Origin: Mizuhopecten yessoensis
Taxonomy: Eukaryota
Reading direction: 5' to 3'
Length of the DNA stretch: 62,313 nucleotides
Assembly: GCF_002113885.1 (NCBI RefSeq)
Contig: NW_018480078.1
Span: 1,365,584-1,427,896, forward strand
A program made the translations under genes and the position numbers. Below, piece by piece: positions 35,300 through 62,313 of the stretch (positions are counted from its first letter, which is position 1; each line of letters begins with the position of its first letter). A model generated the notes under the pieces. The model saw nothing but the letters and a program-made list of their open reading frames with translations, made no database searches and was not told where the DNA came from.

Positions 35300-36290
35300 G
35301 TGATCAACATGAAGCTTCCTTAATGTAATAAGATATCTCAAGATGTGTTATATACATATATGTTCACATAATCCTATGTAAAAGTTTGTTTCAAGATTTC
35401 ATATGAACATAATATCATGTAATAAGTTGACTTCATATTCCAGATATCATATTCATATTATCGTATGTAATAACTTTTATTTCACATATCTTATACACAA
35501 AATTTATGTAGTAGGTTGATTCCAGGTTTTTAAGATTAAATATACCATACTTATGTAATCTAATGTTTACTCAAGATTTAAGTTTGATTTCAGATACCAT
35601 ATGCATCAAACCTTTTATAATAGTTTGACTGCAGATTTAATATTCACATAGTTTTATGTAAAAGAGTTGACTCCACGTATCAAATGTACACATAATCTTC
35701 TGTAACAAGCTTATTGAAGATATTCCAGATGTTAAATACCATATTCACCTACTTAAATTTAATTAGATGACTCCAGATTGCTTATTCACATTCTATTATG
35801 TAGTATGTTGACCATAGATACCATATACTGATAACAAGTCATGGTGTGATGAGATTATTCTAGATATCATAATACCATTATCTTCTGTGATATATTGATT
35901 CCAGATTTCATATCATCAAAATATTTTGCAAGTTTATTTCAGATATCATATGTACAAAATATTATGTGATAACTTGACTAGATTTCATATCATCACAATA
36001 TTATGCAAGGTTATTTCAGATATCATATGTTCAAAATATTATGTGATAACTTGACTCTAGAATTTATATCATCACAATATTATGCAAGTTTATTTCAGAT
36101 ATCATATGTACAAAATATTATGTGATAACTTGACTAGATTTCATATCATCACAATATTATGCAAGTTTATTTCAGATATCATATGTACAAAATATTATGC
36201 AATAACTTAAGTCTAGATTTCATATTCATATCATCTATTGTAAAAGTTTGACCCAAGATGTCATATAACGATGTGTAGTATGTTGATTTC
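35300..36290 (+). repeat. Degenerate ~39-bp tandem repeat with a younger 77-79 bp dimer amplification (35890-36220)
   Basis: TTCAGATATCATATGTACAAAATATTATGTGATAACTTGACTAGATTTCATATCATCACAATATTATGCAAG repeated about 4 times. Confidence 0.85.
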
Positions 36291-38589: not shown

Positions 38590-39280
38590 TGACCTCTTGA
38601 GACAGAGTGTAGGGTACTTGTCATACAACTATAATCAAATTATAGCTACGTTCTAGGGAGAATATACCGTATCTGTCATACAGCCATAATTAAATTATGA
38701 CTAAGTTCTAGGGAGAGTATAATTAGATTATAAGGAACTTCTAGGGAGGGTGTACGGTCCCTGTCATACATACAGCTATATCCATATTATAGCTAACTTC
38801 TAGGTAGAATATACGGTCCCTGTCATACATACAGCTATATCCATATTATAGCTAACTTCTAGGGAGAGTATACGGTCCCTGTCATACATACAGCTATAAC
38901 CAGATGATAACTTACTTCTAGGGAGTGTTTACGGGACCTGTCATACAGTTATAACCATATGATAACTTATTTATAGGAAGAGTATACGGTCCCTGTCATA
39001 CTAACAGCTATAACCAAATGATAACTAACCTCTAGGGAGAGTATACGGTCCCTGTCATACAAACAGCTATAACCAGATTATAATAACCTCTAGGGAGAGT
39101 ATACGGTCCCTGTCATATTAACAGCTATAACCAGATTATAACTTATCCTCTAGGAAGAGTATACGATCCCTGTCATACTAACAGCTATAACCAGATTATA
39201 ACTTAACCTCTAGGAAGAGTATACGATCCCTGTCATACAAACAGCTATAACCAGATTATAACTTAACCTCTAGGGAGAGT
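38590..39280 (+). repeat. About 59-bp tandem repeat, about 11 copies
   Basis: TCTAGGGAGAGTATACGGTCCCTGTCATAC(AA)ACAGCTATAACCAGATTATAACTTAACC. Confidence 0.92.
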
Positions 39281-40039: not shown

Positions 40040-40125
40040 CTACATGTTTGAAACCAGCATTTTGACCTTTTCCTTTGGGTTTGTATTTCCCGAGTACTTG
40101 TCTTGTGGTGGCGAAACAGGAAAAG
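40040..40125 (-). CDS. Grindelwald-like copy 1: cytoplasmic tail exon
   Basis: CTTTCAG / AFPVSPPQDKYSGNTNPKEKVKMLVSNM*. Confidence 0.7.
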
Positions 40126-42695
40126 CTGAAAGCATTAAAAATAGCCATATAATGGTTTGTATAAGTTTTTGAAAACGTAGGCCCTTTCAAATGTTAACAT
40201 TGTATAATAGCTTATAGCTATTGTTTCTTGATGGTACTGGAATCGAAATAATTGAATATTTAACTCAGGGTAAATCTTTACAGTTGTTTGTGAATATCCT
40301 ACCTCTTCGGTCTTTGTTGTTAGTGGTAGTCTGTCGGTTCCGATACCACATGAACAGCATCACGGCTACTGCACCGAGACTGAAAGTCCCTAATATAATC
40401 AGCAAAAATTGGTATATCTCCATTCTCATACCTGTTAAAGAGCAATACATCTACTCAATATTTGTACGAAATTATCTAATCGAAATGAGAACATTTATCA
40501 AAAGAAATGTGGTATATTGGAATGTAGATATTTTTAAGACTTTTACATTCTGTTATGCTCACCATCTGACGATAAGGTATTGTCAAATGTTGGTGTTACA
40601 AATGACGTCAACCCTCAGGTAACACTACAGGGGAGGTAACGACTGTCTTATTATTAGTGATGGCATAATGTCGCTCATATAGCGAAAATTAGACAATCGA
40701 AATGTATGATAATTAGATGAATGGGGGCCTAACTATTACAATGTCAATATATGGATTATACGCAACGAGTACAATTAATGCCATTATAACTAAAAGGGAA
40801 TTTGATTTCAACAATTTGATATTCATCAAAGAACAAATAGTGTACCTGTTTTCTCCTTCTTAACCGCGTGGACACATTCTGCTGCAGAAATAAAATATCA
40901 CCAATATCACTTCAAGAATCATTTCATGTATTAAATAAAATGGTAGAAAAAAATTCTCTGAAAACTAAGAATTACATTCCAATAAAATTGTCTTTCTGCA
41001 AAGTTAACGTCAAAATGTTTAATCCAAAATGAAATATTCGCTTGAGATTCTTGTACATATATACAGGCTATGTATAAATTATCATAAAAACGGTTGAAAT
41101 TAGGAGCAAGAAGTATAAGATTTACAGCTCAGAACCAACTAGGTTTATCCAGCCTTAATGATTTTTATGTAGTCGTGTAAACTGATCAAGATTTGTGATA
41201 TTTGTATGTAAATACCTTTATGTAAATTTCCTACTTAACAATCTTGGTTTGTTATGCAATATTGATAATCCTAAACCTGACCAATCCACAGGTTCAGGAG
41301 ATGACATATTGCCAAATTATAGATACAATACAATACAATACAATTATAGATGTGCACTTGGAACGTTTAGTGGTAGCCTAAATGAGCGGTAGTTTAGTGG
41401 TTTGGTTAACCACTTAACATCCATTTAGTGGTTACCTATAAATAAAACCCTTCACTTTCGTAGGATTACGGGGACGCCTCATCAAAACCTCTATGTTTCT
41501 AATACCGTACTAACCACAGTCAATCACGTTGTGATACTGTTAAGTCACATAGTGGCATCTAACAAAGATGGATTTTATAAAAAAAAATATACAGAATTTC
41601 TTCTAAGTTTTGAATCACAATCAGTGGCGTAGCATACATGTATGCTTATATGCTCAAGCATACACTAAAATTTTCATTTTTTTATCTTATCTATTCAATC
41701 ATTTCCCTTTTCTATGATTAATATGGACCGTCCGTATCAATCATAAAAAGGGGGGGGGGGGGGGGAGGAAACAATCTTTAATATTTTAGTCTGATAATTT
41801 AAGAATCTCGAGAGGTTTATGTATATCAAAACCTACTTAGTGAAGTTAAAAATTTAATATAATTCATATTAAAAGTCGGGTTTTACTAGTTAATAATCAG
41901 ACGCATCCGACGCTCGACCCCCTGTAAGCATATACACTCCGAAAAATGATTTGCTACGCCACTGCCAATCGTTGTCAAAAAACAACTTCTGTTGAAAATT
42001 CTACTTACCAGTATTGTTTGCACTATTCGCGGCGAGAGGGGCCTGTAGGGTTAACCTGTCGACTGAAAAGAAAACAGCGAAATATGAACTCCAACGTTTG
42101 CTACAGCATAGTGCCTGAGTGGTTGTTGATGTGATTTGATTTCAATTGAAGATGTACCAATAATATGTATTTCATCTTCTTTAAGGAAAACTTGTAACCA
42201 GCTATGAAATAGTTGACTCATGGTTCTTATGAATTAATTAATCCAAGTGACATTTCAAGTGAAGAAGTTTTGTGTGAACAAATACTTCAATATTAATGCA
42301 AAGTAATCACTCATTGAGTCAAGAGCTATGTCAGCATCCAGTTCAGACATAATATGTATTTTATGGCAAATGCAAGCAATTGCCTTTAATTACCACTAAT
42401 ATTTTTTTGTAAAACTGGAACGTGTTTATAACGATAATAGATAACAAATACAAAACTCACTCGCTTCACAGTAGAAGTAGCACTGGGCAAGCATTCCTCC
42501 GTCAAAGCCGGGTGTGTTGCAGACCGCTTCATTGCATGGGAAGCATTGCTGTTGGTAGCAATACTCTTTCATTATGTTACACGAGGAATCCCCACACTGG
42601 ACCAATACATGCTTTAGTATTGGTCTTCCAGTTGTTGGTAGGGTTGTCGCAGCCATTACCATAATGGCTAACAGGCATGCGATGCTGGGTCCCAT
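40040..42695 (-). CDS. Grindelwald-like single-CRD TNF-receptor-type membrane protein, copy 1, intact, 179 aa
   Basis: Exons 42461-42695, 42009-42062, 40846-40881, 40303-40431 and 40040-40125 have GT-AG phase-1 introns and total 540 nt open. Signal peptide MGPSIACLLAIMVMAA; CRD CGDSSCNIMKEYCYQQQCFPCNEAVCNTPGFDGGMLAQCYFYC; short stalk; TM IYQFLLIILGTFSLGAVAVMLFMWY followed by RNR; short tail ending KMLVSNM*. Confidence 0.8.
40303..40431 (-). CDS. Grindelwald-like copy 1: transmembrane exon
   Basis: GMRMEIYQFLLIILGTFSLGAVAVMLFMWYRNRQTTTNNKDRR / GTAGGA. Confidence 0.8.
40846..40881 (-). CDS. Grindelwald-like copy 1: 36-nt stalk micro-exon
   Basis: TTTCTGCAG / AECVHAVKKEKT / GTACAC; phase 1-1. 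Confidence 0.65.
41622..41964. mobile_element. Non-autonomous DNA transposon in an intron of Grindelwald-like copy 1
   Basis: Perfect TIR CAGTGGCGTAGCA / TGCTACGCCACTG; flanks ACAAT and CCAAT (near 5-bp TSD). Confidence 0.75.
42009..42062 (-). CDS. Grindelwald-like copy 1: stalk exon
   Basis: TTTTCTTTTCAG / IDRLTLQAPLAANSANNT / GTAAGT. Confidence 0.75.
42461..42695 (-). CDS. Grindelwald-like copy 1: signal peptide plus CRD exon
   Basis: TTTTACAG acceptor 7 nt before the ATG; 8-Cys domain; GTGAGT donor. Confidence 0.85.
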
Positions 42696-43673
42696 TCTCA
42701 GTCTGTAAAATAATAAGAGACTTTGTACACTTCATGGCCTTCTCTATAAAATGATATAACCGCATACTAATGCAAACAAAACACAGTTTTAAAAACAAGT
42801 CTCATCGTATTATTTTATATATATATATGACATTAGAACAGGAGGCAGCTTAATACTTTTTTTAATTTCATATTTCTATTTATATTGGCAGTCAATTGAT
42901 AATTATAATTTTCAAAAAAGAAAAGGATTAAAGAATATTACAGCCAACGGCTGGTTGTGGCCAGGAGAGGTTTTTCCTAATATCTTATTTCTAGTGAATA
43001 AGTCTCCAGGATTTGTGTCATGATAGGAGATTTTTTTTTATCAAGGTTCAAGACGACAAATATTGAATATTCATTATTTATCATTCTTCTATAAGGTAAT
43101 ATAGCAATCACTTTTGAAGTATCGTTCACTCCATTTGTTGTGTTCCGGGTAATTTTTGTATGGTTTGTTATGCGTTTCTGGAATCATTAGATATACCGTG
43201 TATTTGTTTTAGTAATATACTGTTAATCTCCTTTGTTTCTTATTTATAGATTTAGTGATGTTATTGTTTCTGTTCATGTGCTAAGATCGAATTTCACCTA
43301 CATTTTTGTACAAATAGTTAACTGTCACGGTTACGATCACGTGCTCAGTTCATAGCTAGTGTACATGATTTATGCATGAACATTTGAGTGTTAAAATGCA
43401 AATGATCGTATGTTTGTTAACCTGTTAGACTACACACTCTAACTGTGAATAGAATAAAGTTTGGCGTCACGATCTGCTTTATGAGACAAAGTTATAGTCT
43501 CATAACTTTCAGCTCATTTTGTTAGGTTTTGATGTTGACAATGCAGAGCAAATACTTTTGTATGTCAATACGTTAAAATATATCTGACTACACAAGCTGT
43601 TATCCTATTCATGAAGTATATTATTCAACATGTAAAAGAAAATATCATTTATGAAATCGCAAAAAACACCTAC

Positions 43674-43800
43674 TTTATATCGTCTCCGACAATCCGTTGT
43701 TTAGATATGGTCCTGCTTCCTCTGGGCCACTTCGAAAGTCCTTCAATTTAATTACAATTTCAATTGCATATACACTAAACACGCTGAAAATTTTCTATGT
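43674..43800 (-). other. Putative non-coding first exon of Grindelwald-like copy 1 (5' boundary uncertain)
   Basis: The ATG exon begins with an acceptor. A good donor (AAA/GTAGGT) lies at 43672-43673 with no in-frame upstream ATG. Confidence 0.35.
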
Positions 43801-44615
43801 ATAAATAGAACACTATAAATAATATAATATGGAAAATCCAATACACAACTGAATCATGGGATATATCATGCTACCATACCTGTACATTCCTGTGACCTAC
43901 AGGTGTATATCAATGTTACATAATCATAGCAAACTGGACAATTGTGTGCGCAATACTTTCCAAATTATCAATTGAATGGAAGGCGAATAGACTGGAAACA
44001 CGTGTTTAATTATATTAACCAACATTGCGCCTTCATTCCCCCTTGACCATGTTAGGGTCTAAAAAGCTTAAATGTACTTTCGTGTGTTATTGCGTTCTCA
44101 CAAGTTTATAAATGTCAATAATATCTATCTGTTATATAGGATAACGTTCCGTGTGTTATGAAACAAATCATCAATATTCGCTAAATACTATGGTTAACTC
44201 TGCAAGGGAAAATAAAAGATGATGATGGTGACAGTTATATCAAATGCATTAGTTATGATATATACAGAACCGTTATGGATTTGTGTAATACTCCCTCATT
44301 TTATCGCTTGCTATTTTGATTGATACAATTTATTATTATCATATTTTATACTAGTGACTAAACTTAATCAGTAGTATATATATAGAGAAAAAGAACCGCA
44401 AAGGAACAGAGGTTTGTAGTTATCAGCAGTGATAAAACACCTCTTCCGAATAAGATAAAAATGACTATTATTCCTGCAGTACTTTCTAAACAATCAAATA
44501 CTTTCGAATATGTTTGACAATATTACAAAACATACTATGAATAATGTGGAACAAATTATTTGATATGTACTACCAACGTACAGGGAATGGAATTGCGAGG
44601 ATTTTTGTCGTTCAG

Positions 44616-46538
44616 TTATTATTCCCGAAGGGCCAAGTGAGCTTATGTCATACTGCAGCGTCCGTCGTCTGTCGTCCGTCAACTTTTTACATTTTAATCT
44701 TCTTCTTCAAACCTACTGGGCCAATTTTGACCAAACTTGACATGAAATACCACTAGGACCCAGGGGTTATTTCATTATTAAATTATGAAATGTATAGGGC
44801 TACGCCCCTAGGGGCCTGAGGGGCGGGGCCAATTGGATAAAAAAATGGAGTCATCTTTAAAATTCTTCTTCTCTTCTCCTACAAGTAGTAGAGAGTAATG
44901 GCCCTAGGGTCAAGGAGTCAAGAGGGAGGGCGGGGTCAATATTGTGTACATTTAAATTTCTTCTTCAAAACTGCTGGGCCAATTTCGACCAAATTTGACT
45001 TGGAACATCACTAGGATATGGGGATCTGACTTTATGAAATTTTTGGGGCTGCACTCCCAGGGGCCTGAGGGGTGGGGCCAAATAGGTAAAGAATGGGGTA
45101 ATCTTTAAAAATCTTCTTCTCTACTCCTTCAAGTAGCAGAAAGTAACTGCACATTTAATTATAATCATCAACTAGCTTTCTTTTGAATTTATGAAATTTA
45201 TGACCCTGGGGTCAAGGGGTCAAGGGGTCAAGGGGTCAAGGGGTCAAGGGGTCAAGTGGTAGGGTGGGGTCAAAATTATATGTTATGGATCGTTGTATCT
45301 TTGAAACAGTTGAGACCCCCACCCCATAACCATATATAGTATTGCAGGGCATCAAGAGATAAATACAATCATGATGTAAAAATAGGCACTGGGTTTTTTC
45401 CCCAACCCTAGGGACTTAGTTTCTGGGTTATATCTTTGAAACCGTTGAGATCCCCACCCGATAACCATATATATCATTGCTGGGCATCAAGAGATAAACA
45501 CAAGCATGATGTAAAAATAGGCCTTGGGGTCTTTCCCCGCCTCTAGGGACTTAGTTTCTGGGTTATATGTTTGAAACCGTTGAGATCCCCACCCGATAAC
45601 CATATATAGCATTGCTTGGCATCAAGAGATAAACACAAGCATGATGTAAAAATAGGCCACTGGGTCTTTCCCCACCCCTAGGGACTTAGTTTCTGGGTTA
45701 TATGTTTGAAACCGTTGAGATCCCCACCCCATAACCACATATAGCATTGCTGGGCATCAAGAGATAAACACAAGCATAATGTAAAAATAGGCCTTGGGGT
45801 CTTTCCCCACCTCTAGGGACTTAGTTTCCGGGTTATATATTTGAAACCGTTGAGATCCCCACCCCATAACCACATATAGCATTGCTGGGCATCAAGAGAT
45901 AAACACAATCATTATGTAAAAATAGGCCACTGGGTCTTTCCTAATCCGGATGGACTTAGTTTCTGGGTTATATCTTTAAAACAGTTGAGATCCCCACCCT
46001 AACCATAACCATATATACAATTACTGAGTATAAAAACGAATGAACATATGTTTCCAGGATGGCCCTGGGGTTTACCCCACCCTTGGAGACTTGACCCCTT
46101 GGTCATAACTTCGAAATGAAAAAAGATCCCCATCCCAAAACTTTATATACAAATGCTGCGCATGAGGAGATGGGGTCTGCCCAACCCTTGTAGACTTAAC
46201 CCCTGGGTCACAACTTTGAAACGGTTGAGATCCCCAACCCAAAAGTATATATACAAATGCTGGGCATAAAGAGACGAATGCAGTCATGATATTACAATTG
46301 ATCCTGGGGTCTTGCCACAACCCTAGAGGCTTAGTTTCTGAGTCACAGATTGGAAACAGTTGAGATCCTGACCCCATAACCATACATAAAATTGCTGGGA
46401 ATGAAAAATCTAATACAGATATGCTACAAGGATTGGCCTAGGGGTCTGACCCATTCCCTTGGACCTTATTTAGAGAATATTTTGCCATGATTGCTTAGAT
46501 ATCAAGGTGAGAGATACAGGTCCTCTGGGCCTCTTGTT
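44616..46538 (+). mobile_element. Non-autonomous Helentron/HINE (DINE-1-like) element with an internal 135-bp tandem array
   Basis: 5' end GTGAGCTTATG..(CGTC)n microsatellite. Six 135-bp units start at 45306, 45441, 45576, 45711, 45846 and 45981. 3' end CAAGGTGAGAGATACAGGTCCTCTGGGCCTCTTGTT. Confidence 0.75.
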
Positions 46539-46954
46539 TAAATGTACAGGCGAAACTTTAATCAACTGGAATTTGGATACTAAACATTAAATGTAAATGG
46601 AGGAATTAATATATTCCATCCAGACTCATGTCTCTGTAAAAAGTTTGTTTTGGGCTCATAGATTTTCCTCAAAATGATAAAGAATCAAAGCACTTTGGGA
46701 ATCATGTTTCAGGAACAATGTAAACCAACATTTATTGAGAATATTGTTTATTTCTGTGATATTTGAAAACAATATGTTTGCACACGCACACCCATTAATA
46801 TTACCAAATCGAAAACAAAATCACCTGAACATGTATTCCTGAAGCATCCATGAAGACACTATTATCAGGAAAACTATGAAAAAATGGTTCACATTTCCAG
46901 AATAATGACAGGCTAAGGGCACGAGTCAAGCCTGATTACCTGAGTGGGAACATG

Positions 46955-47415
46955 TTCTGAACAGTGTAAAGGTATTTTATGCATGCTTTACATGTTTGTT
47001 TTACCTTCAGACAGCCTTGATGACTTTGTGCTTCATTGTGATATATTACATGCATATACATACCATCATTCTGAACAGTGTAAATGTAAATTATGCATGC
47101 TTTACATGTTTGTTTTACCTTCAGACAGCCTTGATGACTTTGTGCTTCATTGTGATATATTACATGCATATACATACCATCATTCTGAACAGTGTAAATG
47201 TAAATTATGCATGCTTTACATGTTTGTTTTACCTTCAGTCAGCCTTGATGACTTTGTGCTTCATTGTGACATATTACATGGATATACATACCATCATTCT
47301 CAACAGTGTAAAGGTAAATTATGCATGCTTTACATGTTTTTTTTACCTTCAGTCAGCCTTGATGACTTTGTGCTTCATTGTGATATATTACATGGATATA
47401 CATACCATCATTCTG
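46955..47415 (+). repeat. 114-bp tandem repeat, 4 copies
   Basis: Units start at 46955, 47069, 47183 and 47297. Confidence 0.95.
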
Positions 47416-50400
47416 GGACATTTAAAACATTTTCTTTTTTGGCGATAATAATGACTACATGAACATATCGTAACTTCTCATGAAGGTAACAGGGCTGAGC
47501 GCATGACTACATGGATACTTCGGGAGCACATGTACAGATAATTTGTCTCATTATTTATGTTATTCAAAGGTATTCAGAAAAAGAAAAAATCTGTGTTCAA
47601 ATGACACATTTCAGACAAAAACAAATCTTTCAACTGTGTCATCAATTGTCATAATTTACATTGTTCTTAGAGGAAAAATGATGCACCCACAACAGTTTTT
47701 CTACACCGATATGAGCACAGGTGAAATGCCTTAAAGGCATGTTGTTACACATTTTAAAGTTATTTTCTGTTCTTTGTAGATTTATTTATCACAGAATAAC
47801 AACGCTCCGTTATATATTTTAAAGTTAACTTTGGAATGTCTGACAAATCTCATAAATCTTTAACAAGTTAACAAATAAATATTTCAATAACTTTATGTTG
47901 AATGAATTCGACAGTCATCATGCAAAAGTTGTTTATGTCAATTTGAATATTGGACAATATATAACAATATTATTGCTATATATAGATTTCAACTTATTTT
48001 AAATAACAGAAGCATTGTATAGGGATAATTCTATTGATGCGGGATATAGAAAACAGAAACCCAGTTCCAAGTTTATGCATATTCAAAATACAATTCACGT
48101 GTCTTGCTGAACATGTCAAAGCTTATTATCAAAAATAGCATATCATTACGTGGATGTTGAAGTCAAACTGTCGTCAATAAATAATATGTTCGTTAGAATG
48201 TGTCCATTATAATAAACCAGTTAGACTATCTTTACTTCGTCCGGCTCTACTGAATTAAAATGCTTATATATGTATATACACATAGATACGTTTTAGACAC
48301 AGTCGACGAGGACGCCGAACCGATATCAATAAATTCAAATGATAAAACTACCGATTACCTTGTAAGTATCTCAGCAGTGCTTTAAACACGTCTTGTCGTG
48401 GCGAAAGATATCTCTCCACTGAACTTAAACGTAGGTAAAGGAAGACCGGAGTGACTGGATAATAGGGAATTTTTGAAAAATCTATTTTTAAATTATCGTT
48501 AATTATTGGAATTCCATAAAAGTCTATCTTTACGTCGCTGTACCTAAAACGGGACATTACCCAGAACAGGACACGTGTGGCAATTCGGCCCAGGAAACTG
48601 TCATGCAATGCAAAGAAATACATTTATTTATGTAGTTTTCTCTTGGTAGTACTTTTATGACAATTTAACAGTATATACACTCTATTGGCTGCTACATGGA
48701 CAATTTAAATGTAAGAATAATTGAAAAAAACAAAAAAAACGTGATTTACGTGATTTATTTGGATATCATTTTCGAAAGTGTATTTGATCAAAATTGATGC
48801 TAGTTAGGAAAAGAAATTTAATCAGAACCCCATTTGAACTATATATACTATTATGCTTAAATTGATTGTTCATCTCCCAATAATGGCCAAAATACTGAAA
48901 TGTCTCGTTAAGGGTATAGTAACACCTGTTCAAAAGCCTACGTGACTCTGATAGTATTTAACGTTCTATTTATAGAACCACGTTAGAAAGTTACATACGC
49001 ATGTGATATCATATAATAGATATTCACAAATGTATTTAATTGTAATAGATATATAGTTAACTGTAATGAAGTTATCTGTAAGATAACAGTGCATTGTAAC
49101 TTGAAAGAAATCTCTATTTCAATACAAATATTTATTATATCTAATGATAAAGATATTTCAACTTGTAAGCAATACACATATGTAACTAGTAATGGGCACT
49201 ATATTTTTTTTTTATCAAAATCAATTATTAATCAATTTTGGAATAATGTGGTACATTGTCATTGGTAAGTATTAAATGTTAATTTAGCTTGCCATGGTTT
49301 CCAGTATTCTGAAATAAGTAATAAACCTGTGGATGATTTTACCAAGTACTACTGCACATGAATGAAAGAAGTAGACTCAAGATAAGTGACAGATTTAAAG
49401 TTTTATTTTTGATATCATATATGGTGCAAAAGCTACAGTCCAAAAAAGTTTCTAACTTGTACTTCACAATGTTTGATCCTATTACTGTCTTTCAACAGAA
49501 ACCAAGTTTTTTTGCCACTACCAACTAGCTGTCAACTTCAATAGAGTCGCAGTAATTTACCGACACAAATTATTTAAAGTATCAAATCTAGATTCACAGG
49601 TACAATGTGTGTATTGTTTTATTAAATACACGTAGACCCGCTACAGGATACAATAAATCATAATTAATTTCACAACACATTACCTTGGTGCTGTAATATT
49701 TCTGTCCTATTCCAAGTCCTTTCCTTACCCCAACACACTCGCTAGGAACCTCAGGAAGATAACGAAATTGCAGCGTATACTAATACAAACATGTAGCTGA
49801 AAATATCAGCTTTATTAAATTATGACCATCACCCTGACCATACCCCATATTTCCTTCGGAACGTGTTTATTTCATCTTATTTTGCATTGAGAACACAGGA
49901 AAGTGTTTATCGTTCCGCAATGTCCATAGCTCAAACAGATCATCACCAATATAGGCAAGGCATGAACCCTCAGGGTTCCATGCAAAAAGTGGATGGTATC
50001 AATGTTTGAAAAATTAACAAACATGTTTTTGAATTGATAGTATGGTATAAAGTAGCATGATGCTTAACAAGGTCCCATTTGGGGTACAGTGATGTTACAT
50101 ACAAGACGCAATAGTTCCTCTGTTAAGCTAAAAGGACAAAGGAATGCGGCACAACATTTAAGTCTAGAACATTATACGAACATAGTCATATGATACTTTT
50201 AACATATCTTTTGCTGCTCCTATAAAAACAAGCATTCCTTAAAAACAATTTTGATTTACAAACAACTTTTACTCCTAAGCGTTTCTTTTTCATGGATGTA
50301 TTGTCAAAAGAGATATGTGTGATCCCCTCTTTATGTTGTTGTTCAACCTGTTAACTGAGATCAGCTGCACGATTGATGTTAATGTAACTTAGAAAATATT

Positions 50401-50503
50401 TAAACCTTGAACTACAGATGATGGCTACGAGAACCTTTAATACACAGTACATCTTCCGTGATTGATACAGGTATGCTTTAAGTGTCATCAAGATAATTTT
50501 TAA

Positions 50504-53500
50504 GGTTTAAAGCAAGGACACCAACAATCAGAAGAACTTTACTAATACATGTAGTATGCATCCCTTTAATTCTAAGGGGATACTAAATAATGCAGAAATG
50601 ATTGGCGGTCCCTTGTTATAATATTTAGAATTCATGGTCGTCCCCATGATTTGTATATGGAAATATGATATTTCTTTGTGTGGTATGAAGGTCGAAGTGT
50701 TTGATTATGCTCATTAATGTACCTTTTGGTGTTGTTATCTCTATCCCAGTTCTCAGTGGGAGGACGTGACATTACTTGGACTTGTCCTAGACTTACATGG
50801 CACCTGGGCCCGTATTAATGAAACCGTTCTCATGATCAAGAATATATTTTGTGCTCAAGCCTAATTTATTGTTAAGGTTTTAAATCAGTAAGTAAATCTT
50901 CATTCGCCAAGGTTTTGGAAATATTATGAAGCCAAATATTGATTTCATTGTTTATTTTTGACTTTTCGATCGTTTGAAATAATTTAGGCGAGCTACCGGG
51001 ATCTGTTCCCCAGCATCGACACGGAAATACCTTATAAACTCATTCACCCCTAAAATTGCATAATGAACTATTCTAGCCTTTGAATTGGAAGAGTTCAAAT
51101 TTGTTTTCAGGGGGGAATGAGTTTAACACAAAAAACTAACACACTTACCGAATATACATTGTTGCAAGTTTCCGTTTAGCTAAACCTTAGAGGCGGTTGC
51201 GGTGGCCTATATGTTGTATAAAACATATCGGACTTGTCCTTATCAGAAAAAATTATGTACGAACAGACAGGTAATTTACTTTGTGTAAGATCGATTATTA
51301 GCTCGTTATCCTGTTGCTATCTCACAGTGACAGCTATCAGCCTCGGTGTTAATGATTTGTCCGTGTGTAACAGGCAATACTTATATGCAAAATAATGACA
51401 CAAAACCATAATGAATTGTTTCAGAAATATTTAATGTTAGAGAAAAACAGAAAATTATATATGGTTTGATGCGTTTTTATATATCATTTTAATGGAAATA
51501 CTGTTTAGAAATAGACATAATGTGAATTTTCTTTCACAGAAAGTTTCCATGTTAGGTAGGATCGAGATATATTTCCCAACACAAAACATTAATTTAGGGT
51601 ATATACAGATGCATCAAGTTCTCGTTTCTCACAAACAAAAATAAGATTTAACGCCCGCCAATTTTCGGTCAATGATTAGTTAGCCAGGACACCTGTGCGC
51701 TTGATCATAGTATTTTCAGTTATGTCGAGTCATACCCGATATTTTATGAACAATGGAACACATGGGACATTGAAACGTATATAGTGAAACATTAAATTCA
51801 TATACTATGAATTTCAAAATAGGTTCAATCCTAAATCGGGAACCTAACAATAACCGCGAACAAGGCAACAAGAAAGATTTTCAGATTAACATGACAGGGT
51901 TGTTCACAGGACATTTTTCAGTTATCTATAAAAATGAGGAATAACGTGATAACTTGAATACGTTAAAAAAATCTGAGACACACGTTGACGGTACAACTAC
52001 ATGTTTTTGTACCACGTTAATAACAATTTACCAAGTATGTACAGTATTTAGAGGTTATTATATGACTATTTTGATATCACACCCTTTATCAGCTGAGACC
52101 TTGATATCAGCATAAGGGCCGCATGCTGATATTAGGTCATTGGCTGATTAAGGGTGTGATATCAAAAAAATAGTTTCATAACCTTTTATCACACATTTTG
52201 AAAAACAAAACATTTTTTTGGAACAATTCAACTTCTAATCAACATAATCAACATCAGAATAAACAAACATGAGCACTTCTGTTTCTATCCGTCAAAGTTC
52301 TGTGTAATAAAAGACCAAAAGTCAGAAACAGCGCGAGCTGACCAGTCCTATCAATGACCAAACTTCAGAATCGTTCATTATCTGAAATGTTACTATCGTC
52401 TGCGCCGGGAACCGAGGCGCCTAAACGTAAAACTGAAATCCGTAGTGAAGAACCCAGATGAAGTGATATCAGCCCGGGTTGATAACTAGTTATCGGCCCA
52501 TGTTGGTGAAAGAACTGTTTATCAGCCCGGACACTGATATGACAAAACAAACAGCACTTGTATCACATGGGCAAAATGTATATTACCAGAGACAAAGTGT
52601 GATAAAATAAAGGCATTAACAGGACAGTTGTGAACTTTAGAAAACACAAATTGTGAACCTTATCCTAACCTCAAATAACAGTCATTTGTTGACAATGGAA
52701 GTGTTATTTGCTGATAGAAGAGATATAGTAATTAAAGCCGTTGTTTCCACTTAAAAATACTCGTCTCTGGGTCACAGCAAAATAATTGTGACAGTACTTT
52801 TCTTGCTTTTACACCGGTATCCATCCATGTTTGAGTAAGGAAACAATGTTTTACCCTCAAATGTTTACAAATCCAACAGCTGGTAAACATTATACTTCAT
52901 AGTGATACGTCACGTTTGATGGGCTTTTGCCTTTTTATAATGGGTTATGAATGATGTTTTGTAAATTTTGAGAATTTCTTACATATATTTTTCTGCTTTT
53001 AAATATTGTTTGTTATTATCCTTAAGCATGGCGCTAATGGTTACTTAATTGCCAAACACTGTAATATTTACCTACAGTATGCCAATGACTATCACTTGAC
53101 TACCAATATGAATTATATTTTTATGACTTTATGACTTTAACGACTTTACTTTGAGAATAACATGTATCAACTTTCCTTTTTCTCAGCAGTAAATATATCA
53201 GTCTCCAAAGGTATTATCATGTCACAATTGGTTTGCTACTTTAAAATATTTTGAAGTATCAGACGTTTCATCTTTGCGAGTTTCCTTTTGAACTAGATAT
53301 ACATAGTCAGTGTTTTATATCGCGGATACATCAATATCCTGACCTTGGTTTCAACTTCGACCTTCCGTGTCTGCGATGACTTAACCTGATATAAGACTGT
53401 TCAGTCTGTCTTCGTTGGAACGTTGATGACATACACAATTTCTTGAATTTGACAGGAGACACCTGGGCAGGTACCACAGGTTGTGCGAGAAACGCTCACT

Positions 53501-53870
53501 CTTCCAGATTTATGGTGCTGCATCCGGGTTTATTGCAGGAAGCAGTATGGGGTGTACTTTCATAAAGATAACATAGACATACTTGTTTCTATCTAACTTC
53601 ACAGCATTGTATATGCTATTATGAACGTGACTGTCACCAAATGCTGTATTGAATCTCATGTGGTTGCTGTCCTTTTTATGGACGTATTTGCCCACTTTAT
53701 CTGAGACCCGCTGTACCAGTCTTGTATGCTTGACAGTAGCATGGCGTGTCTACTATGTCAGAATAAATCACTTCTTAGCTAACATGGCGCTGGTTCCTGC
53801 ATCAGCTTAGCAGAAATAGCCAACTCCGCGGCATCCTGTGGCTCCGTGGTACCAGCATACCTTCCCTGTG
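50504..53870 (+). repeat. Segmental duplication, copy A
   Basis: Near-identical to 58971-62313 (offset 8467 at start, 8443 at window end), with scattered substitutions and small indels. Confidence 0.95.
52045..52606 (+). mobile_element. Non-autonomous DNA element with a long internal palindrome, possibly Crypton-like (duplicate at 60528-61067; relatives at 36398-36774 and 55651-56014)
   Basis: Starts TAGAGG.TATTA.ATG, has a hairpin at 52069-52167, then TTTATCACA, and ends TGTGATAAA. The family name comes from memory of similar mollusc repeats and is unverified. Confidence 0.45.
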
Positions 53871-56800
53871 GTAGATGACTCTTCAGTGTGACTATTAATA
53901 TAAAAACAATCATATAATAGACTATAAGTAGAGACACTCTTCTCTTGAATCCTAACATTGATAATAGCTTACAGGTATTTACTGAAAAAGTGTATTAATC
54001 ATATGTGTGACTGAATCGAATGGATGAAGCAAAAATAGAAAGAATTAACAGGAATGTTAGAAATATTCATATATGGCTATTCTGCATATCAAATAACACA
54101 GTGTGCTGGTAAATGTTTATCCATTTCTTCATTGGAAAGAGACGGAATGCCTTACTTATTTGCATACAAAACGGTTTTGTATACTGAAACATGAAACATG
54201 TTATACTACCTGGTTATTTTTAAATAAGGAGCAGTTCCCAAATCAAATCACCTTTTGAAAAATTACTTTCAAATCAACCAATGTGTCAACAGTTAAGTTA
54301 TTACAGCGATATAGCGTTATAATACATAGTCGGGCATTATATTTTGTCAACAGATGGTTAATTTTTAAATTTAAATAGCACCAGGAGATGTATTTCAAAC
54401 TCGAAATTTTGTGTTATTTGCTAACGATGTAAAAAAAATGACACGTGCGCGACCTATGCGTTCTGTTTCGCATGAAGGAATAAATCTAGATCATAAAAAA
54501 TCTTTGTATTCATACTAATTCCAAAGGTCATCACCACATGTGAAAATGCTAACAAATGTGTTCATTTGAAGTGGATGATAAAGCAAAATTCGAGTCGTGA
54601 TTCGTTTTCGGCACAGACATTTGCAAAATTGATGATGTCCGAGTTTTTTTTTATATCTCACATTGGACACGGGCTTTTTCATTTCATTAGTAAGAACACT
54701 CGTCAATATTCTTCTATGTGATACAACCATATTTGAATATAACTCATTCTTTACAAACCTTTCGGACAATCTCCATTTCGATTCCTGATGCATTTATAGT
54801 AAATCGCTAAAGATGCTATGCCTAAGACGTAACCCAATATTGGCATTACCACCATCAAGACAGTTTCAAGTTGCACATCTGAATGAAAAAAAATATTTAT
54901 ATTTTTTAATAGTCCAATATGTGTTTAACACTAATATTTCATAATGAGTCCAATACTTCCACATGTTTTTGGCCCTGTCAAGTGTATCTTAGCTTTTAAA
55001 CAAATACTACACCAATTTACACATTAAAATTAGACCCGTTTACATTCAATGCGTTTTTCTGTTTAAAACAAAATAAAATAGTACTATAATCAGAGCCTCC
55101 CGTTTACATACCTGAAGAATTGCATGCCTCTTCAGTTATGGTCTGTTGTGCTAGGTAATAAAGTTAACATAATAAGACAATTGAAAAAACCAACAATACA
55201 AACAGAAAAAAACAATATATATTAGTTGAAGCTAAAAAGACATTTTAAAATATACCAAAAACTATAAATATGAAATAATTGGCAAAGGGCTAATTATCGA
55301 ATATACAATTTAACAAAATTCAAGATTATACCATTGGGGGATAATGTGAAAATCTTTCTTTGTATTTTTAATAAATTAACTTTATAAATTGCTTATCTTA
55401 CCGATCTTTTTGGCTTGCTATTTTTAGGAATCGTGGAAAACTTTTAATTTGTATAAATCAGCTACCTTGACATCTTTACAGGTTGACGTATTGCTCTTCG
55501 ATGTATGCTTACCATGTGAGCTCCTCTGAGAGAAGTAACAACTTATTGTACCCTTATATTGCATGTTTCGAGGTTTTCAGTGACCAAAAACGTATCACCT
55601 GGCTAGCGACTAGAAGCATACTTCATTTTATAGGCTATTTCTGGTGTTGATATTTTTTCTCTTACCCTTGAGACAGGTGTATCCACACTTCTCCCGATGT
55701 GAGATATCCTTGTCTCATCCTAGGGTTGAGACGGGGGGATTCCAATATTCATAACAATTATATGACGTCACGTCAACAATTCATCAACGTCACGTCAACC
55801 CTGCATTAAGCCTATACATTTGACGTTACATTAAGTATATGATACATAATGGGAGAACAGGGAAAGAGAAAAGGAATCATTCACCCCCTTGAGGTGAGAT
55901 TGGGAATCCGAACCATTTGGGAAAGATTCTCATGTTTGGCAACTTAAGAATCTCCCCCTCCCCCATCGGGTTGAGAGTCCCCTATCTCACCCCAAGGGGA
56001 TGACAAATTCTATTAGTCTCTATTAAATTGTTCTTGTTAATATCGCTTAAAATGGCGTTCTTGTCTTGTATTGCTGATGGCAACAACTTACCTGGTGCTT
56101 TAGTGAAGGTGTCAGTTGAAGTTTGTAGCGCAGGCGAAGTGGTATCTTCAAGTACTGTATATGTAAAACAAGTAAGCAAATGCTTAAATTCTATTCTTCA
56201 AAGAATGGAATGATGTAACTCTCTGTGTGACACAATCCGAGAAACATGTTAACTTATAACAACTTGGAAAAAAATAAAATTTGTTTTCCAAATCATGGTC
56301 AGAAGTATAAAGGCGAACTTGTTTACCAATATTACCAAATTATCTTTAAGTCAACACTTAAACATGGAAGACTATGTCCATATTGAAGTGATGTATAATG
56401 TTATTATGAGTATAATTATTTATGTCAACTTACCTGTCATCTGCAACATCTTCTTCTTAACTGAAAAATAACGATCACATGAAAAATGGATATGTCTGCA
56501 TTTCTTTTGTAAAGAGTAAAGCGCCAAATGTAAAACCAAAACTATTTTAAAGGTACAGAGAAGTTCTCTATTGTATAATTCTACAGGCAAACATTAATTA
56601 TGTGCAAAAACATTCTGGGCTTTCTTATCAGAGTTTTATTGAAGTGTATGTATGATCAGACCATTTTTGTCACAATATTATTGACAGGTTCACACTGATA
56701 AGCTGGAAGTTTTCAACTTTGGACACACAGGGTGATATCTGCAGCATTACTGATTAAACTTTTTATGGATATCATCATTGATATTAAATTCAAAGACATG

Positions 56801-57369
56801 AGAGCCCGAATGCAGTGATAAAGATAATGCTAAGCTTGATCCTATAATAAAGCTAAGCTGTTCACTAAACTTTCAACAAGCTACGCTGGGTATGAGTATT
56901 TGTTAGATTAACAAAAATGTACAAAATGGTTTTCAAACAACATTATTAATCATTTTTGTTAATCTAATCTAGAAATGTCTGTACATGTGTAAGCTGAGAT
57001 CAAGGATTTTCCTACATATTTTCAAGACAATTTATGAACTATGCTTGTATTCAAGGATAAGAAATGATATTGATAATGATATTACCCCATTATTGTTTTC
57101 TACTTCATTTGGTAAACATTAACTAGAGTCGTAGTTTGAATTTGTATGCCTCACCTTCCATACAATAAAAGTAGCACTGCACTGGTCTGCCTCCCGGACT
57201 CAATGACATGCTGCAAACGTCGGTGTTACATTTCATACACATCTTGAAATGGCAGTATTCTGTCCAATGTGCTTTTCCCACAAGGTATCGGTATGCTATC
57301 TGGAGCGCTCCATTCTCCTTGAACTAGTCCGCACGCTAGGGCAAATAGAAAAGGCATAATTTCTGCCAT
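53222..57369 (-). pseudogene. Grindelwald-like copy 2, frameshifted in the CRD exon
   Basis: Exons 57155-57369, 56434-56460, 56092-56154, 55112-55150, 54759-54878 (TM: VLMVVMPILGYVLGIASLAIYY) and 53222-53292 (VQKETRKDETSDTSKYFKVANQL*), all phase 1. Translation: MAEIMPFLFALACGLVQG...CGKST[frameshift near 57267]WTEYCHFKMCMKCNTDVCSMSLSPGGRPVQCYFYCME. The unshifted frame stops at TAA 57226-57228. Confidence 0.75.
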
Positions 57370-57664
57370 TGTTTTTGCCTAAAATGAAAATAATAAATCA
57401 TTTGATATTAATTTGCATATCATTTGTTGCTAGTAATGAGTTAACAAAATAAATAAACAAAAATCATGAAATGTAGCAAAAATCAAAATAAGTAAATAAT
57501 AAAAAAATAAATATAAAATAATAAAACAATGAAAGCGAAACAATACTACTAATAAATGTAATTCCATCATACTTAAGTATAGGCGACAATGGCTACTCTT
57601 TAAGACAAATATGTTCATTCATTCTTTATTAGCCAAAGGCCCTTAGGTGTATAGGTACATACAT

Positions 57665-58970
57665 CTTTTCAATTTCAATAAATTTTATTGTCAAAGGACA
57701 AATGGATTGGGCACCAGGCAAAGCCTATTTAAGCCCTCTCCAAACACAGTAACAAACAGTGGTACAAGGATAGACATAGACATTAGAACACATACACACC
57801 CATATAAAAAAAGTTGGTATTATCAAATTAATAATCAAATTAGGGGGAAACAACTACTAATACCCATTTTTATTATAATTGAATCTAATGGTTTAAATGA
57901 TACCGAAAAGACATATAAAATATATTATGAAGAGAAAAGAAAAATAATTTGTTGATGGAGCTGCATGTATAAACATTTGATGGGATCAAATTACCGCACC
58001 CAACAGATACAGGCCAAAAAGTCCATTGTATCACACAAGGTCATCCACTGATGAGTTTGGAAATTCAATCCCACCAAATAGTTAAATTTATGCATATTAA
58101 ACACAGTTTAAATATATATTATCAACATGTTGTAAAGCTTTGAATTCTTATTTATGTAGTTGTTTCCCAATATTTATTATTTAGTATAACTGGTCTTCTG
58201 AACCCCAGCCCCCCTCCCCCCTCACTATCAATATTTAAGAATAAACAAAAAGAAGACAAATAGGAAATATTAGTATTAATATTCATGTACCATTTTTGGA
58301 AATCAGAAGAATTACATGGAGTTAATTTTAGTTAATTTTCCTGAATCTTCTAGAACTTGAAATGTAATTGGATATAGATATGAGAATATGTTTGTTTTCA
58401 TTTTCATTATATCTCTCACATCCATTTAGCATGACATCTACTGATAAATGGTTGTGAGATTCATGGAATATATTCTGAAAAAGTACAATACGATCTTCAG
58501 TGTTTTTTTACAATCATGGAAATAATGAGATGATGTTTTAAATCTTGAACCACAAGAACATGCAGAGGATAATCTTTCTGATGGTCGTTATTTAGGTTAC
58601 TGGCCTCATTTCTCAACTGACAAAGAATTATATTAGTTTCCCGATTTCCTAAAATCTTAAAGACATCAGTTGTTCTTGTGTTTGAATTTGGGTTAGGTGT
58701 TATGAACTTTTTGAACTGATAGGCGGAACGAATATTTTGAAGGTCTGAAGCGATATTATATTTTTCATTAAATATGGATGGAAAAAAAGGCATTAGAATA
58801 GTTAACAGTTCGACAAAGAGGAGGATAAAATATTCTAACAGATCTAAGGGTATACAAAGCTAGTGTGGGATCATGAAAATGTGACTCATTGATTTCTTTC
58901 AGGTAATATGGAGTTTCATTATTCATAATCTTGTACATCAGCACCATTTTATGTTGTTGAATAGTTTGAC
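57665..58970 (-). mobile_element. 5'-truncated, decayed CR1-clade LINE
   Basis: Frameshifted ORF2 C-terminus: QHKMVLMYKIMNNETPYYL, YTLR, CRTVNYSNAFF, GNRETNIILCQLRNEASNLNND, CSCG...HYFHDC. The 3' UTR ends GGAGAGGGCTTAAATAGG...CAATAAAATTTATTGAAATTGAAA. Confidence 0.8.
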
Positions 58971-61900
58971 GGTTTAAAGCAAGGATACCAACAATCAGAA
59001 GAACTTTACTTATACATGTAGTATGCATCCCTTTAATTCTAAGGGGATACTAAATAATGCAGAAATGATTGGTGGTCCCTTGTTATAATATTGAGAATTC
59101 ATGGTCGTCCCCATGATTTTTATATGGAAATATGACATTTCTTTGTGTGGTATAAAGGTCGAAGTGTTTGATTATGCTCATTAATGTACCTTTTGGTGTT
59201 GTTATCTCTATCCCAGTTCTCGGTGTGAGGACGTGACATTACTTGGACTTGTCCTAGACTTACATGGCGGGTGTCGTCGATGAAGCAGAAGACACTTACC
59301 ATTGCGGAACACCTGGATCAGTATTAATGAAACCGTTCTCATGATCAAGAATAAATTTTGTGCTCAAGCCTAATTTATTGTTAAGGTTTTAAATCAGTAA
59401 GTAAATCTTCATTCGCCAAGGTTTTGGAAATATTATGAAGCCAAATATTGATTTCATTGTTTATTTTTGACTTTTCGATCGTTTGAAATAATTTAGGCAT
59501 CGACACGGAAATACCTTATAAACTCATTCACCCCTAAAATTGCATAATGAACAATTCTAACCTTTGAATTGGAAGAGTTCAAATTTGTTTTCAGGGGTGA
59601 ATGAGTTTAACACAAAAAACTAACACACTTACCGAATATACATTGTTGCAAGTTTCGGTTTAGCTAAACCTTAGAGGCGGTTGCGGTGGCCTATATGTTG
59701 TATAAAACATATCGGACTTGTCCTTATCAGAAAAAATTATGTACGAACAGACAGGTAATTTACTTTGTGTAAGATCGATTATTAGCTCGTTATCCTGTTG
59801 CTATCTCACAGTGACAGCTGACAGCCTCGGTGTTAATGATTTGTCCGTGTGTAACAGGCAATACTTATATGCAAAATAATTACACAAAACCATAATGAAT
59901 TGTTTCAGAAATATTTAATGTTAGAGAAAAACAGAAAATTATATATGGTTTGATGCGTTTTTATATATCATTTTAATGGAAATACTGTTTAGAAATAGAC
60001 ATAATGTGAATTTTCTTTCACAGAAAGTTGCCATGTTAAGTAGGATCGAGATATATTTCCCAACACAAAACATTAATTTAGGGTATATACAGATGCATCA
60101 AGTTCTAGTTTCTCACAAACAAAAATAAAATTTAACGCCCGCAATTCTCGGTCAATTATTAGTTAGCCAGGACACCTGTGCGCTTGATCATAGTATTTTC
60201 AGTTATGTCGAGTCATACCCTATATTTTATGAACAATGGAACACATGGGACATTGAAACGTATATAGTGAAACATTAAAGTCATACACTATGAATTTCAA
60301 AATAGGTTCAATCCTAAATCGGGAACCTAACAATAACCGCGAACAAGGCAACAAGAAAGATTTTCAGATTAACATGACAGGGTTGTTCACAGGACATTTT
60401 TCAGTTATCTATAAAAATGAGAAATAACGTAATAACTTGAATACGTTCAAAAAATCAGAGACACACATTGACGGTACAACTACATGTTTTTGTACCAAGT
60501 TAATAACAATTTACCAAGTATGTACAGTATTTAGAGGTTATTATATGACTATTTTGATATCACACCCTTTATTGATAAGGGCCGCATGCTGATATTAGGT
60601 CATTGGCTGATTAAGGGTGTGATATCAAAAAAGAAATTTCATAACCTTTTATCACACATTTTGAAAAACAAACATTTTTTTGGAACAATTCAACTTCTAA
60701 TCAACATAATCAACATAAGGATAAACAAACATGAGCACATCTGTTTCTATCCGTCATAGATCTGTGTAATAAAAGACCAAAAGTCAGAAACAGCGCGAGC
60801 TGACCAGTCCTATCAATGACCAAACTTCAGAATCATTCATTATCTGTAATGTTGCTATCGTCTGCGCCGGGAACCGAGGCGCCTAAACGTAAAACTGAAA
60901 TCCGTAGTGAAGAACCCAGATGAAGTGATATCAGGCAGGTTAATAACTAGTTATCGGCCCAAGTTGGTGAAAGAACTGTTTATCAGCCCGGACACTGATA
61001 TGACAAAACAAACAGCACTTGTATCACATGGGCAAAATGTATATTACCAGAGACAAAGTGTGATAAAATAAAGGCATTAACAGGACAGTTGTGAACTTTA
61101 GAAAACACAAATTGTGAACCTTATCCTAACTCAAATAACAGTCATTTGTTCACAATCGAAGTGTTCTTTGCTGATTAGAAGAGATATAGTAATTAAAGCC
61201 GTTGTTTCCACTTAAAAATAACTCGTCTCTGGGTCACAGCAAAATAATTGTGACAGTACTTTTCTTGCTTTTACACCGGTATCCACCCATGTTTGAGTAA
61301 GGAAACAATGTTTTACCCTCAGATGTTTACAAATCGAACAGCTGGTTAACATTATACTTCATAGTGATACGTCACGTTAAATAGGCTTTTGCCTTTTTAT
61401 AAAGGGCTATGAATGATGTTTTGTGAATTTTGAGAATTTCTTACATATATTTTTTTGCTATTAAATATTGTTTGTTATTTTCCTTAAGCATGGCGCTAAT
61501 GGTTACTTACTTACCAAACACTGTAATATTTACCTACAGTATGCCAATGACTATCACTTGACTACCAATATGAATTACATTTTTATGACTTTAACGACTT
61601 TACTTTGAGAATAATTTTCCTTTTCTCAGCAGTACATATATCAGTCTCCAAAGGTATTATCATGTCACAATTGGTTTGCTACTTTAAAATATTTTGAAGT
61701 ATGAGACGTTTCATCTTTGCGTGTTTCCTTTTGAACTAGATATACATAGTCAGTGTTTTATATCGCGGATACATCAATATCCTGACCTTGGTTTCAACTT
61801 CGACCTTCCGTGTCTGCGATGACTTGACCTGATATAAGACTGTTCAGTCTGTCTTCGTTGGAACGTTGATGACATACACAATTTCTTGAATTTGACAGGA

Positions 61901-62313
61901 GACACCTGGGCAGGTACCACAGGTTGTGCGGGAAACGCTCACTCTTCCAGATTTATGGTGCTGCATCCAGGTTTATTGCAGGAAGCAGTATGGGGTGTAC
62001 TTTCATAAAGATAACATAGACATACTTGTTTCTATCTAACTTCACAGCATTGTATATGCTATTATTAACGTGACTGTCACCAAATGCTGTATTGAATCTC
62101 ATGTGGTTCCTGTCCTTTTTATGGACGTATTTGCCCACTTTATCTGAGACCCGCTGTACCAGTCTTGTATGCTTGACAGTCGCATGGCGTGTCTACTATG
62201 TCAGAATAAATCACTTCTTAGCTAACATGGCGCTGGTTCCTGCATTAACTTAGCAGAAATAGCCAACTCCGCGGCATCCTGTGGCTCCGTGGTACCAGCA
62301 TACCTTCCCTGTG
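58971..62313 (+). repeat. Segmental duplication, copy B (continues beyond window)
   Basis: Begins GGTTTAAAGCAAGGA like 50504 and is colinear to the window end. Confidence 0.95.
61665..61735 (-). CDS. Last coding exon of Grindelwald-like copy 3 (rest of gene lies right of the window)
   Basis: Duplicate of 53222-53292; VQKETRKDETSHTSKYFKVANQL*, with one synonymous and one D>H difference. Confidence 0.55.

Follow-up and report, generated by a model that had tools for sequence, protein, structure and literature searches.

A scallop-restricted tandem cluster of single cysteine-rich domain membrane proteins with a predicted Grindelwald/BCMA-type fold

What is encoded by a tandem set of small, cysteine-rich membrane protein genes in the scallop Mizuhopecten yessoensis, and could the products be receptors for ligands of the tumour necrosis factor (TNF) family? 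We addressed this question in a stretch of 62,313 nucleotides (nt) of contig NW_018480078.1, referred to throughout as the window. It is AT-rich animal DNA, with a GC content of 0.29-0.41 in 2-kb windows. A preliminary description, made from the letters alone, had proposed that its last part carries a cluster of genes resembling Grindelwald (Grnd), the Drosophila TNF receptor with one cysteine-rich domain (CRD). Our analysis confirms that observation in part and supports its interpretation: the cluster is a real, conserved and scallop-restricted set of Grindelwald/BCMA-fold receptor-like genes, which the databases label 'uncharacterized'. The reading that we favour, with a probability of roughly 0.62, is that of a Pectinidae tandem set of type-I membrane proteins with a single Grindelwald/BCMA-TACI-like CRD, acting as TNF-ligand receptors that signal via an adaptor.

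A six-frame pattern search together with tblastn recovered exactly two Cys-domain exons in the whole window, 42461-42702 and 57155-57369. The first belongs to copy 1 (type A; LOC110443846, 40040-42702), which is intact, and the second to copy 2 (type B; LOC110443849, 53779-57369), which has the exon build of copy 1 and a broken Cys exon. Copy 3 (type B; LOC110443836, also KP79_PYT11457) is near-identical to copy 2 and has an intact Cys exon. Only part of its tail exon and its 3' flank, in a tandem duplicate, fall within the window, in agreement with the partial third copy noted before. All three copies lie on the minus strand. In copies 1 and 2 the exon order is the same: an exon for the signal peptide and the eight-cysteine domain, short stalk exons, a transmembrane (TM) exon and a short tail exon (Table 1). 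When the database proteins were mapped back onto the DNA, all introns of both copies were GT-AG, and all internal exons were of phase 1-1 with lengths divisible by three. Each protein thus comprises a signal peptide, one 8-Cys domain, a modular stalk, one TM helix and a tail of 40-60 residues. Pfam finds no death domain, nor any other domain, in the full-length proteins, so the short tail without a death domain stands as first described. The exon joins rest on RefSeq models and on orthologue structure, the spliced proteins used here being database proteins, and the signal peptide was called by eye and from the N-terminal helix of the model.

The Cys exon of copy 1 matches residues 112-191 of XP_021343946/7 ('uncharacterized protein LOC110443846') at 100%. 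Counted from Met114 of XP_021343946, the product is 179 amino acids (aa) long, and an AlphaFold model of this protein places the TM helix at residues 111-145. The RefSeq exons further upstream are probably 5' untranslated region rather than coding sequence, because type A and type B orthologues begin at the signal-peptide Met; the 113-aa extension that they add is probably an annotation artefact. With this extension the annotated copy 1 protein would look non-secreted. The cysteines of copy 1 are spaced C-x4-C-x6-C-x4-C-x2-C-x4-C-x12-C-x3-C. The Cys motif shared by copies 1 and 2 is present as the preliminary description had it, and an alignment of the two Cys exons within the window gives 48% identity across 33 aa (E ~1e-6). 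Scallop orthologues match the copy 1 Cys exon at E 1e-20, and the likeness is therefore far beyond chance.

Two full-length copies had been claimed. The anatomy of both holds, and copy 1 gives the 179-aa product, but copy 2 is broken. When its Cys exon is aligned with that of copy 3 at the DNA level, 8 nt are missing between 57269 and 57268, and the remainder is 97% identical. This deletion removes the Cys2 codon and shifts the frame, and the signal-peptide frame stops at 57226-57228. The RefSeq product of LOC110443849 therefore begins at an internal Met, without the signal peptide or the first four of the eight cysteines. Self-BLAST shows that copies 2 and 3 lie in tandem duplication units, with 50498-53870 matching 58965-62313 at 95-96% identity. 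On the other side, window positions 55229-58902 match the copy 3 locus (L001) at 83-92% identity, with an insertion of ~5.7 kb in the latter. At the copy 3 locus the introns contain this insertion and repeat sequence, and a run of N (L001 22128-25505) occupies the expected place of the TM exon. We treat this run as an assembly gap or masked stretch. The RefSeq product of copy 3 has 136 aa and an odd C-terminus, which is probably an artefact of the gap. The insertion and a dispersed repeat occupy L001 15081-20834 and 21288-22127, and the repeat also occurs in the window at 44659-45121.

How widely is the family distributed? The copy 1 Cys exon was searched with phmmer against 1.84 billion representative proteins, and eight matched at E≤0.001. 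Seven are scallop proteins from three genera, Mizuhopecten, Pecten and Argopecten, and the eighth is an unrelated 1,442-aa repeat protein; no relatives outside scallops appeared among the 1.84 billion. A profile search added further scallop proteins only. The lophotrochozoan-wide family proposed earlier is therefore not borne out by either search. The family proteins fall into three types, A, B and C. In Pecten maximus, a type B and a type A gene are separated by 13.5 kb on one strand and follow the order seen in M. yessoensis, with type C on the opposite strand, and orthologues of all three types are also present in Argopecten irradians. A Cys-domain tree groups the type A proteins of different genera together, and the type C proteins likewise (support 93/99 and 100/100), and leaves type B unresolved between them. 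Given these clades and the gene order in P. maximus, the A/B/C duplications are older than the split of Mizuhopecten, Pecten and Argopecten. By contrast, the B/B duplication of M. yessoensis, an 8.46-kb unit, is recent, and copy 2 has been disabled since. Orthologues, synteny and the tree thus bear out the old duplication between copies 1 and 2 and the recent one between copies 2 and 3 that had been suspected, and the broken copy 2 supports the birth-and-death turnover proposed with them. In P. maximus, some 8.6 kb downstream of the end of the type B gene (L002 20823-20924), there is a 76% translated match to the TM exon of that gene, which may be the relic of another dead copy.

Despite fast protein divergence the family is under purifying selection, since the nonsynonymous rate (dN) in exon 1 is far below the synonymous rate (dS); dN/dS is 0.07-0.35, with dS saturated. 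The copy 1 domain is 35-58% identical to those of the family as a whole and 51-58% identical to those of the type A orthologues. Invariant in nine proteins from the three genera are the eight cysteines, in the pattern C-x4-C-x6-C-x4/5-C-x2-C-x4-C-x12-C-x3-C, together with a Gly after Cys1, an Ile at the second position past Cys2, an aromatic residue ahead of Cys3 (Tyr or Phe in all nine) and a terminal Q-C-x-F-x-C. Outside this domain, M. yessoensis and P. maximus have both kept the TM exon. A tail motif, PPQ-x3-SG-x-T-x-P ... L/M-x-V/I-S-N, is common to types A and B across the three genera.

We modelled the 57-residue Cys domain with AlphaFold2 without templates. The model has a mean predicted local distance difference test score (pLDDT) of 76, with 81-88 in the hairpins, and contains a pair of hairpins and two helices, one short and one longer. 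The hairpin between Cys3 and Cys4 is made of strands 19-22 and 25-28; the last four cysteines sit on helices 31-34 and 45-56. Aligned with VIA-align against 48,161 PDB chains, without a prefilter and at a threshold of Z≥2, this model retrieved five chains, four of which are single-CRD TNF receptors: BCMA twice (8qyb_A, Z 2.5; 9mqo_A, Z 2.4), TACI (1xu1_R, Z 2.5) and the Grindelwald ectodomain (6zsy_A, Z 2.0, root-mean-square deviation 2.9 Å, 41 of 48 residues aligned, 34% identity). The best PDB match in Foldseek was again the BCMA ectodomain, at a non-significant E = 3; re-aligned, it gave Z 3.4 over 39 of 41 residues. A shape search of the ESM Atlas with the domain model placed a cluster of arthropod proteins named 'protein grindelwald' first (template modelling score 0.58 over 51 residues), with another at 0.55 and BCMA at 0.50. 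The Atlas's own model of the RefSeq protein also ranked these same two Grindelwald clusters first, at 0.63 and 0.62. By language-model features the nearest clusters are those of TACI and BCMA, at 0.88 for type A and 0.90 for type B (178 shared features). The full-length model, searched by fold, returned only coiled coils and TM helices, matched via the TM helix. The case for the fold rests on single-CRD TNF receptors ranking first rather than on absolute scores. The agreement between AlphaFold2, ESMFold/Atlas and language-model features, which do not depend on one common model, is hard to put down to chance. Taken together, the models support a Grindelwald/BCMA-type fold for the Cys domain, and the structural matches led by BCMA, TACI and Grindelwald, and not mainly by an unrelated Cys-rich family, speak for the assignment first made.

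If the domain does fold in this way, the function can be sketched by analogy with Grindelwald and with BCMA and TACI. Grindelwald is a receptor for the trimeric TNF-family ligand Eiger and passes the signal via Traf2 to JNK. The hairpin and helical modules would bind in the groove between protomers of a trimeric TNF-family ligand. Clustering of the receptors would then gather the short tails, and an adaptor, probably a TRAF, would be recruited to PPQ-x3-SG-x-T-x-P, which makes the conserved tail motif a natural candidate docking site. Human BCMA and TACI recruit TRAFs through their short tails. The scallop motif resembles the TRAF consensus P-x-E/Q-x-x-aromatic only loosely; PSEE, present in the type C tails, conforms to (P/S/A/T)-x-(Q/E)-E. 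The hairpin residues that differ between types (YQQQ, HFKT, SIDNR) would suit different ligand specificities.

A number of results weigh against the receptor reading. No sequence method ties the cluster to Grindelwald, BCMA, TACI or any other TNF receptor. Neither the exon translations nor the full-length proteins have a Pfam match at E≤10, and this includes PF00020 (TNFR_c6) and the BCMA/TACI/BAFF-R models PF09257, PF09305 and PF09256. Single-sequence and profile searches of the PDB sequences, Grnd included, gave nothing at E≤10, and the phmmer search of 1.84 billion proteins, with its scallop proteins and one unrelated repeat protein, brought up no Grnd. The kinship to TNF-receptor CRDs that the preliminary description had proposed is thus not recovered at the sequence level. 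On the structural side, the domain model is based on nine sequences and its helical end has a pLDDT of only 62-68. The domain has about 45 residues, and Z-scores of 2.0-3.4 are by themselves within the chance range for small domains. The fifth chain at Z≥2 is the FIM module of complement C6 (7q6c_A, Z 2.2), and an EGF-like cluster stands among the ESM Atlas matches at 0.52-0.54. The presumed ligand-contact hairpin is two residues shorter than that of Grnd (x4-5 versus x6). The DxL motif found at the tip of the BCMA/TACI ligand-binding hairpin (PMC8024323) is absent between Cys3 and Cys4, where the scallop proteins have YQQQ, HRQE, HFKT, HNMV, SIDNR or TLNGR. No published TRAF consensus is matched exactly by the tail motif. 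The spliced copy 1 products (179 aa and 161 aa) were looked up as exact sequences in transcript-derived collections and neither was found, and the 8-nt deletion of copy 2 is known from one assembly only.

These results raise the possibility that the genes encode small membrane proteins of a Cys-knot type, specific to scallops and without kinship to TNF receptors, whose shape has merely converged (EGF-like or FIM/Kazal-like) and which would bind, for example, a microbial or matrix component. Such an origin would account for a family restricted to one lineage, for the lack of sequence homology to any TNF receptor, for the low Z-scores and for the EGF-like and complement C6 FIM matches that occur in the same lists. 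We nevertheless consider it unlikely. Of the 48,161 PDB chains, five reach Z≥2 and all but one of these belong to single-CRD TNF receptors, and three partly independent methods converge on Grindelwald, BCMA and TACI. In addition, the number and spacing of the cysteines and the aromatic residue before Cys3 match the Grindelwald pattern, and the overall build is that of Grindelwald, BCMA and Fn14.

Granted a TNF-receptor-like fold, the proteins could still act mainly as decoys or modulators, sequestering ligand as soluble or tail-less forms or blocking other receptors as membrane forms. Because all internal exons are of phase 1-1, skipping of stalk or TM exons keeps the frame and can yield shorter or soluble forms. 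The 54-nt stalk exon is skipped in RefSeq isoform X2 of copy 1, and isoform X2 of the A. irradians type B gene lacks the TM exon and keeps the tail. The A. irradians type A models in the databases (118-119 aa) end before the TM segment. These TM-less models may represent soluble forms or model errors, and soluble decoy forms of the cluster proteins are plausible. The tails, moreover, are very short and carry no known signalling domain. However, types A and B retain the tail motif in three genera, which speaks for a cytoplasmic partner; M. yessoensis and P. maximus have kept the TM exon, and the TM-less models are unverified predictions. A mainly decoy role therefore appears improbable to us, more so than the convergent origin considered above, and signalling TNF-ligand receptors remain the preferred reading.

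The hints of expression are indirect and weak. One RNA run contains 51% of the sampled words of 40150-42750, a stretch of which exons make up ~18%, so that the signal could be unspliced RNA or DNA. RefSeq lists two isoforms for copy 1. That the M. yessoensis cluster is largely decaying and non-functional, with copy 2 dead, copy 3 disrupted and copy 1 perhaps unexpressed, seems very improbable: the frameshift in copy 2, the ~5.7-kb insertion and repeats in the introns of copy 3 with its TM exon hidden by the N run, and the absence of a spliced product from the transcript-derived collections searched would fit it, whereas copies 1 and 3 have intact Cys exons, three genera retain the orthologues, with dN clearly lower than dS, two RefSeq isoforms usually need transcript support, and half of the sampled copy 1 words are held by an RNA run, though maybe as unspliced RNA or DNA.

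The features of the window are collected in Table 1.

Table 1. Exons of the three receptor-like copies and tandem duplication units in the window (coordinates are window positions).
Feature	Coordinates	Strand	Remarks
Copy 1 upstream RefSeq exons	48357-48623 and 43673-43738 (span 43673-48623)	-	open frame; add 113 aa before the signal peptide; probably 5' untranslated region
Copy 1 main coding exon	42461-42702	-	signal peptide and 8-Cys domain; acceptor 42702, ATG 42695, donor gtgagt of phase 1
Copy 1 stalk cassette exon	42009-42062	-	54 nt, phase 1-1; in RefSeq isoform X1, skipped in X2
Copy 1 second stalk exon	40846-40881	-	36 nt, phase 1-1
Copy 1 TM exon	40303-40431	-	129 nt, phase 1-1; modelled helix at residues 111-145 of the 179-aa protein
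Copy 1 tail exon	40040-40125	-	stop 40040-40042; motif PPQ-x3-SG-x-T-x-P ... L/M-x-V/I-S-N
Copy 2 signal-peptide/Cys exon, broken	57155-57369	-	8 nt absent between 57269 and 57268; premature stop 57226-57228
Copy 2 stalk exon a	56434-56460	-	27 nt, phase 1-1
Copy 2 stalk exon b	56092-56154	-	63 nt, phase 1-1
Copy 2 stalk exon c	55112-55150	-	39 nt, phase 1-1
Copy 2 TM exon	54759-54878	-	120 nt, phase 1-1
Copy 2 tail exon	53779-53891	-	stop 53779-53781; conserved LPQGRYAGTTEP...LAISAK motif
Copy 3 tail exon, last 92 nt	62222-62313	-	ends at window edge; same residues as copy 2 tail
First tandem duplication unit	50498-58964		~8.46 kb; copy 2 and its 3' flank; self-BLAST
Second duplication unit, start	58965-62313		copy 3 3' flank and tail exon; continues past window end

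Two alternative last exons were considered and rejected, a 'VPSRNN...' exon 66 nt past the TM exon of copy 1 and an 'EEY-stop' exon of copy 2. In each case the tail lies elsewhere according to RefSeq and to the motif kept in orthologue tails, at 40040-40125 and 53779-53891. A fourth member of the family, the type C gene KP79_PYT11458, lies beyond the window, upstream of copy 3 and on the opposite strand. It stands head-to-head with copy 3, with a DUF3504-domain gene between them (L001 1-2728 and 3441-4323, both minus); DUF3504 domains are often of mobile-element origin. The window also contains satellite-like tandem arrays at 15793-17177, 18346-21039, 35886-36225, 38718-39280, 45292-46007 and 46955-47415, with units of 70-81 nt, 46-50 nt (in both orientations), 77, 59, 135 and 114 nt. 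The last two arrays (units of 135 and 114 nt) fall within the large first intron of copy 1 or its upstream region, and a low-complexity AT-rich stretch (57483-57530) lies upstream of copy 2.

The TNF ligand families of bivalves are greatly expanded, with 27 ligands reported in M. yessoensis, and their receptors are poorly catalogued. Small single-CRD receptors can escape Pfam and hidden Markov model (HMM) searches, and mis-annotation adds to this here, in the form of a spurious 113-aa N-terminal extension, a truncated model of the broken copy and a gap-cut model. As the cluster is both unseen by such searches and mis-annotated, profile-based receptor counts probably underestimate the repertoire. 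The genes are candidates, open to testing, as receptors for orphan TNF ligands of molluscs, and they form a clear small case of gene birth and death. We would go further only tentatively. It is possible, if rather doubtful, that the cluster represents a scallop-only branch of Grindelwald/BCMA-fold TNF receptors that evolves fast, has gone unrecognised, escapes every sequence model and may have no place in the published counts for M. yessoensis. Its three ancient types would, through their modular phase-1 exons, yield membrane and soluble forms, and would diversify along with the scallop's TNF ligands, whose repertoire is unusually large, as a lineage-specific immune ligand-receptor system. Grindelwald-like receptors outside arthropods have already been proposed, and the cluster leaves that picture unchanged.

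How, then, does the cluster compare with the receptors that are known? The scallop domain is like BCMA (TNFRSF17) and CRD2 of TACI (TNFRSF13B) in being a single-CRD unit of ~40 residues, and these give the highest Z-scores (BCMA 2.5-3.4, TACI 2.5). The CRDs of BCMA and TACI have six cysteines and the scallop domain eight. Their vertebrate ligands, BAFF and APRIL, are not known to have scallop orthologues. Our literature search found no paper naming the loci of the cluster. A preprint used custom HMMs on 148 invertebrate proteomes and lists three 'grnd' homologues in M. yessoensis, which are reported to group with one from oyster (bioRxiv 10.1101/2024.07.27.603686). The cluster described here, by contrast, has no detectable oyster relative.

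The closest comparison is with Grindelwald itself. The Grnd ectodomain (PDB 6ZSY; the Eiger complex was solved in the same study) has eight cysteines in four disulfides; an X2 hairpin module precedes a C2 helix-loop-helix whose spacing is C-x3-C-x11-C-x3-C, and Phe46, which precedes Cys47, packs between the two modules (PMC8024323). The scallop proteins differ from it in several respects. They have no HMMER-detectable sequence similarity to Grnd, the Grnd contact residues Tyr48 to Arg53 are not conserved in the family, and the Asn63 glycosylation site of Grnd is absent. Their genes are multi-copy and clustered, in three old types, and their tail motifs probably differ from those of Grnd. The spacing at the C-terminal end, C-x4-C-x12-C-x3-C, is close to that of Grnd and not identical. 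In the scallop proteins, as in Grnd, a hairpin module is predicted to precede a helical one, and an aromatic residue, Tyr or Phe in the place of Phe46, stands directly before Cys3. Like Drosophila Grnd, they are type-I proteins with one small 8-Cys ectodomain, one TM helix and a short tail that lacks a death domain, and this combination of a single CRD, a TM helix and a short tail is the build common to Grindelwald, BCMA and Fn14.

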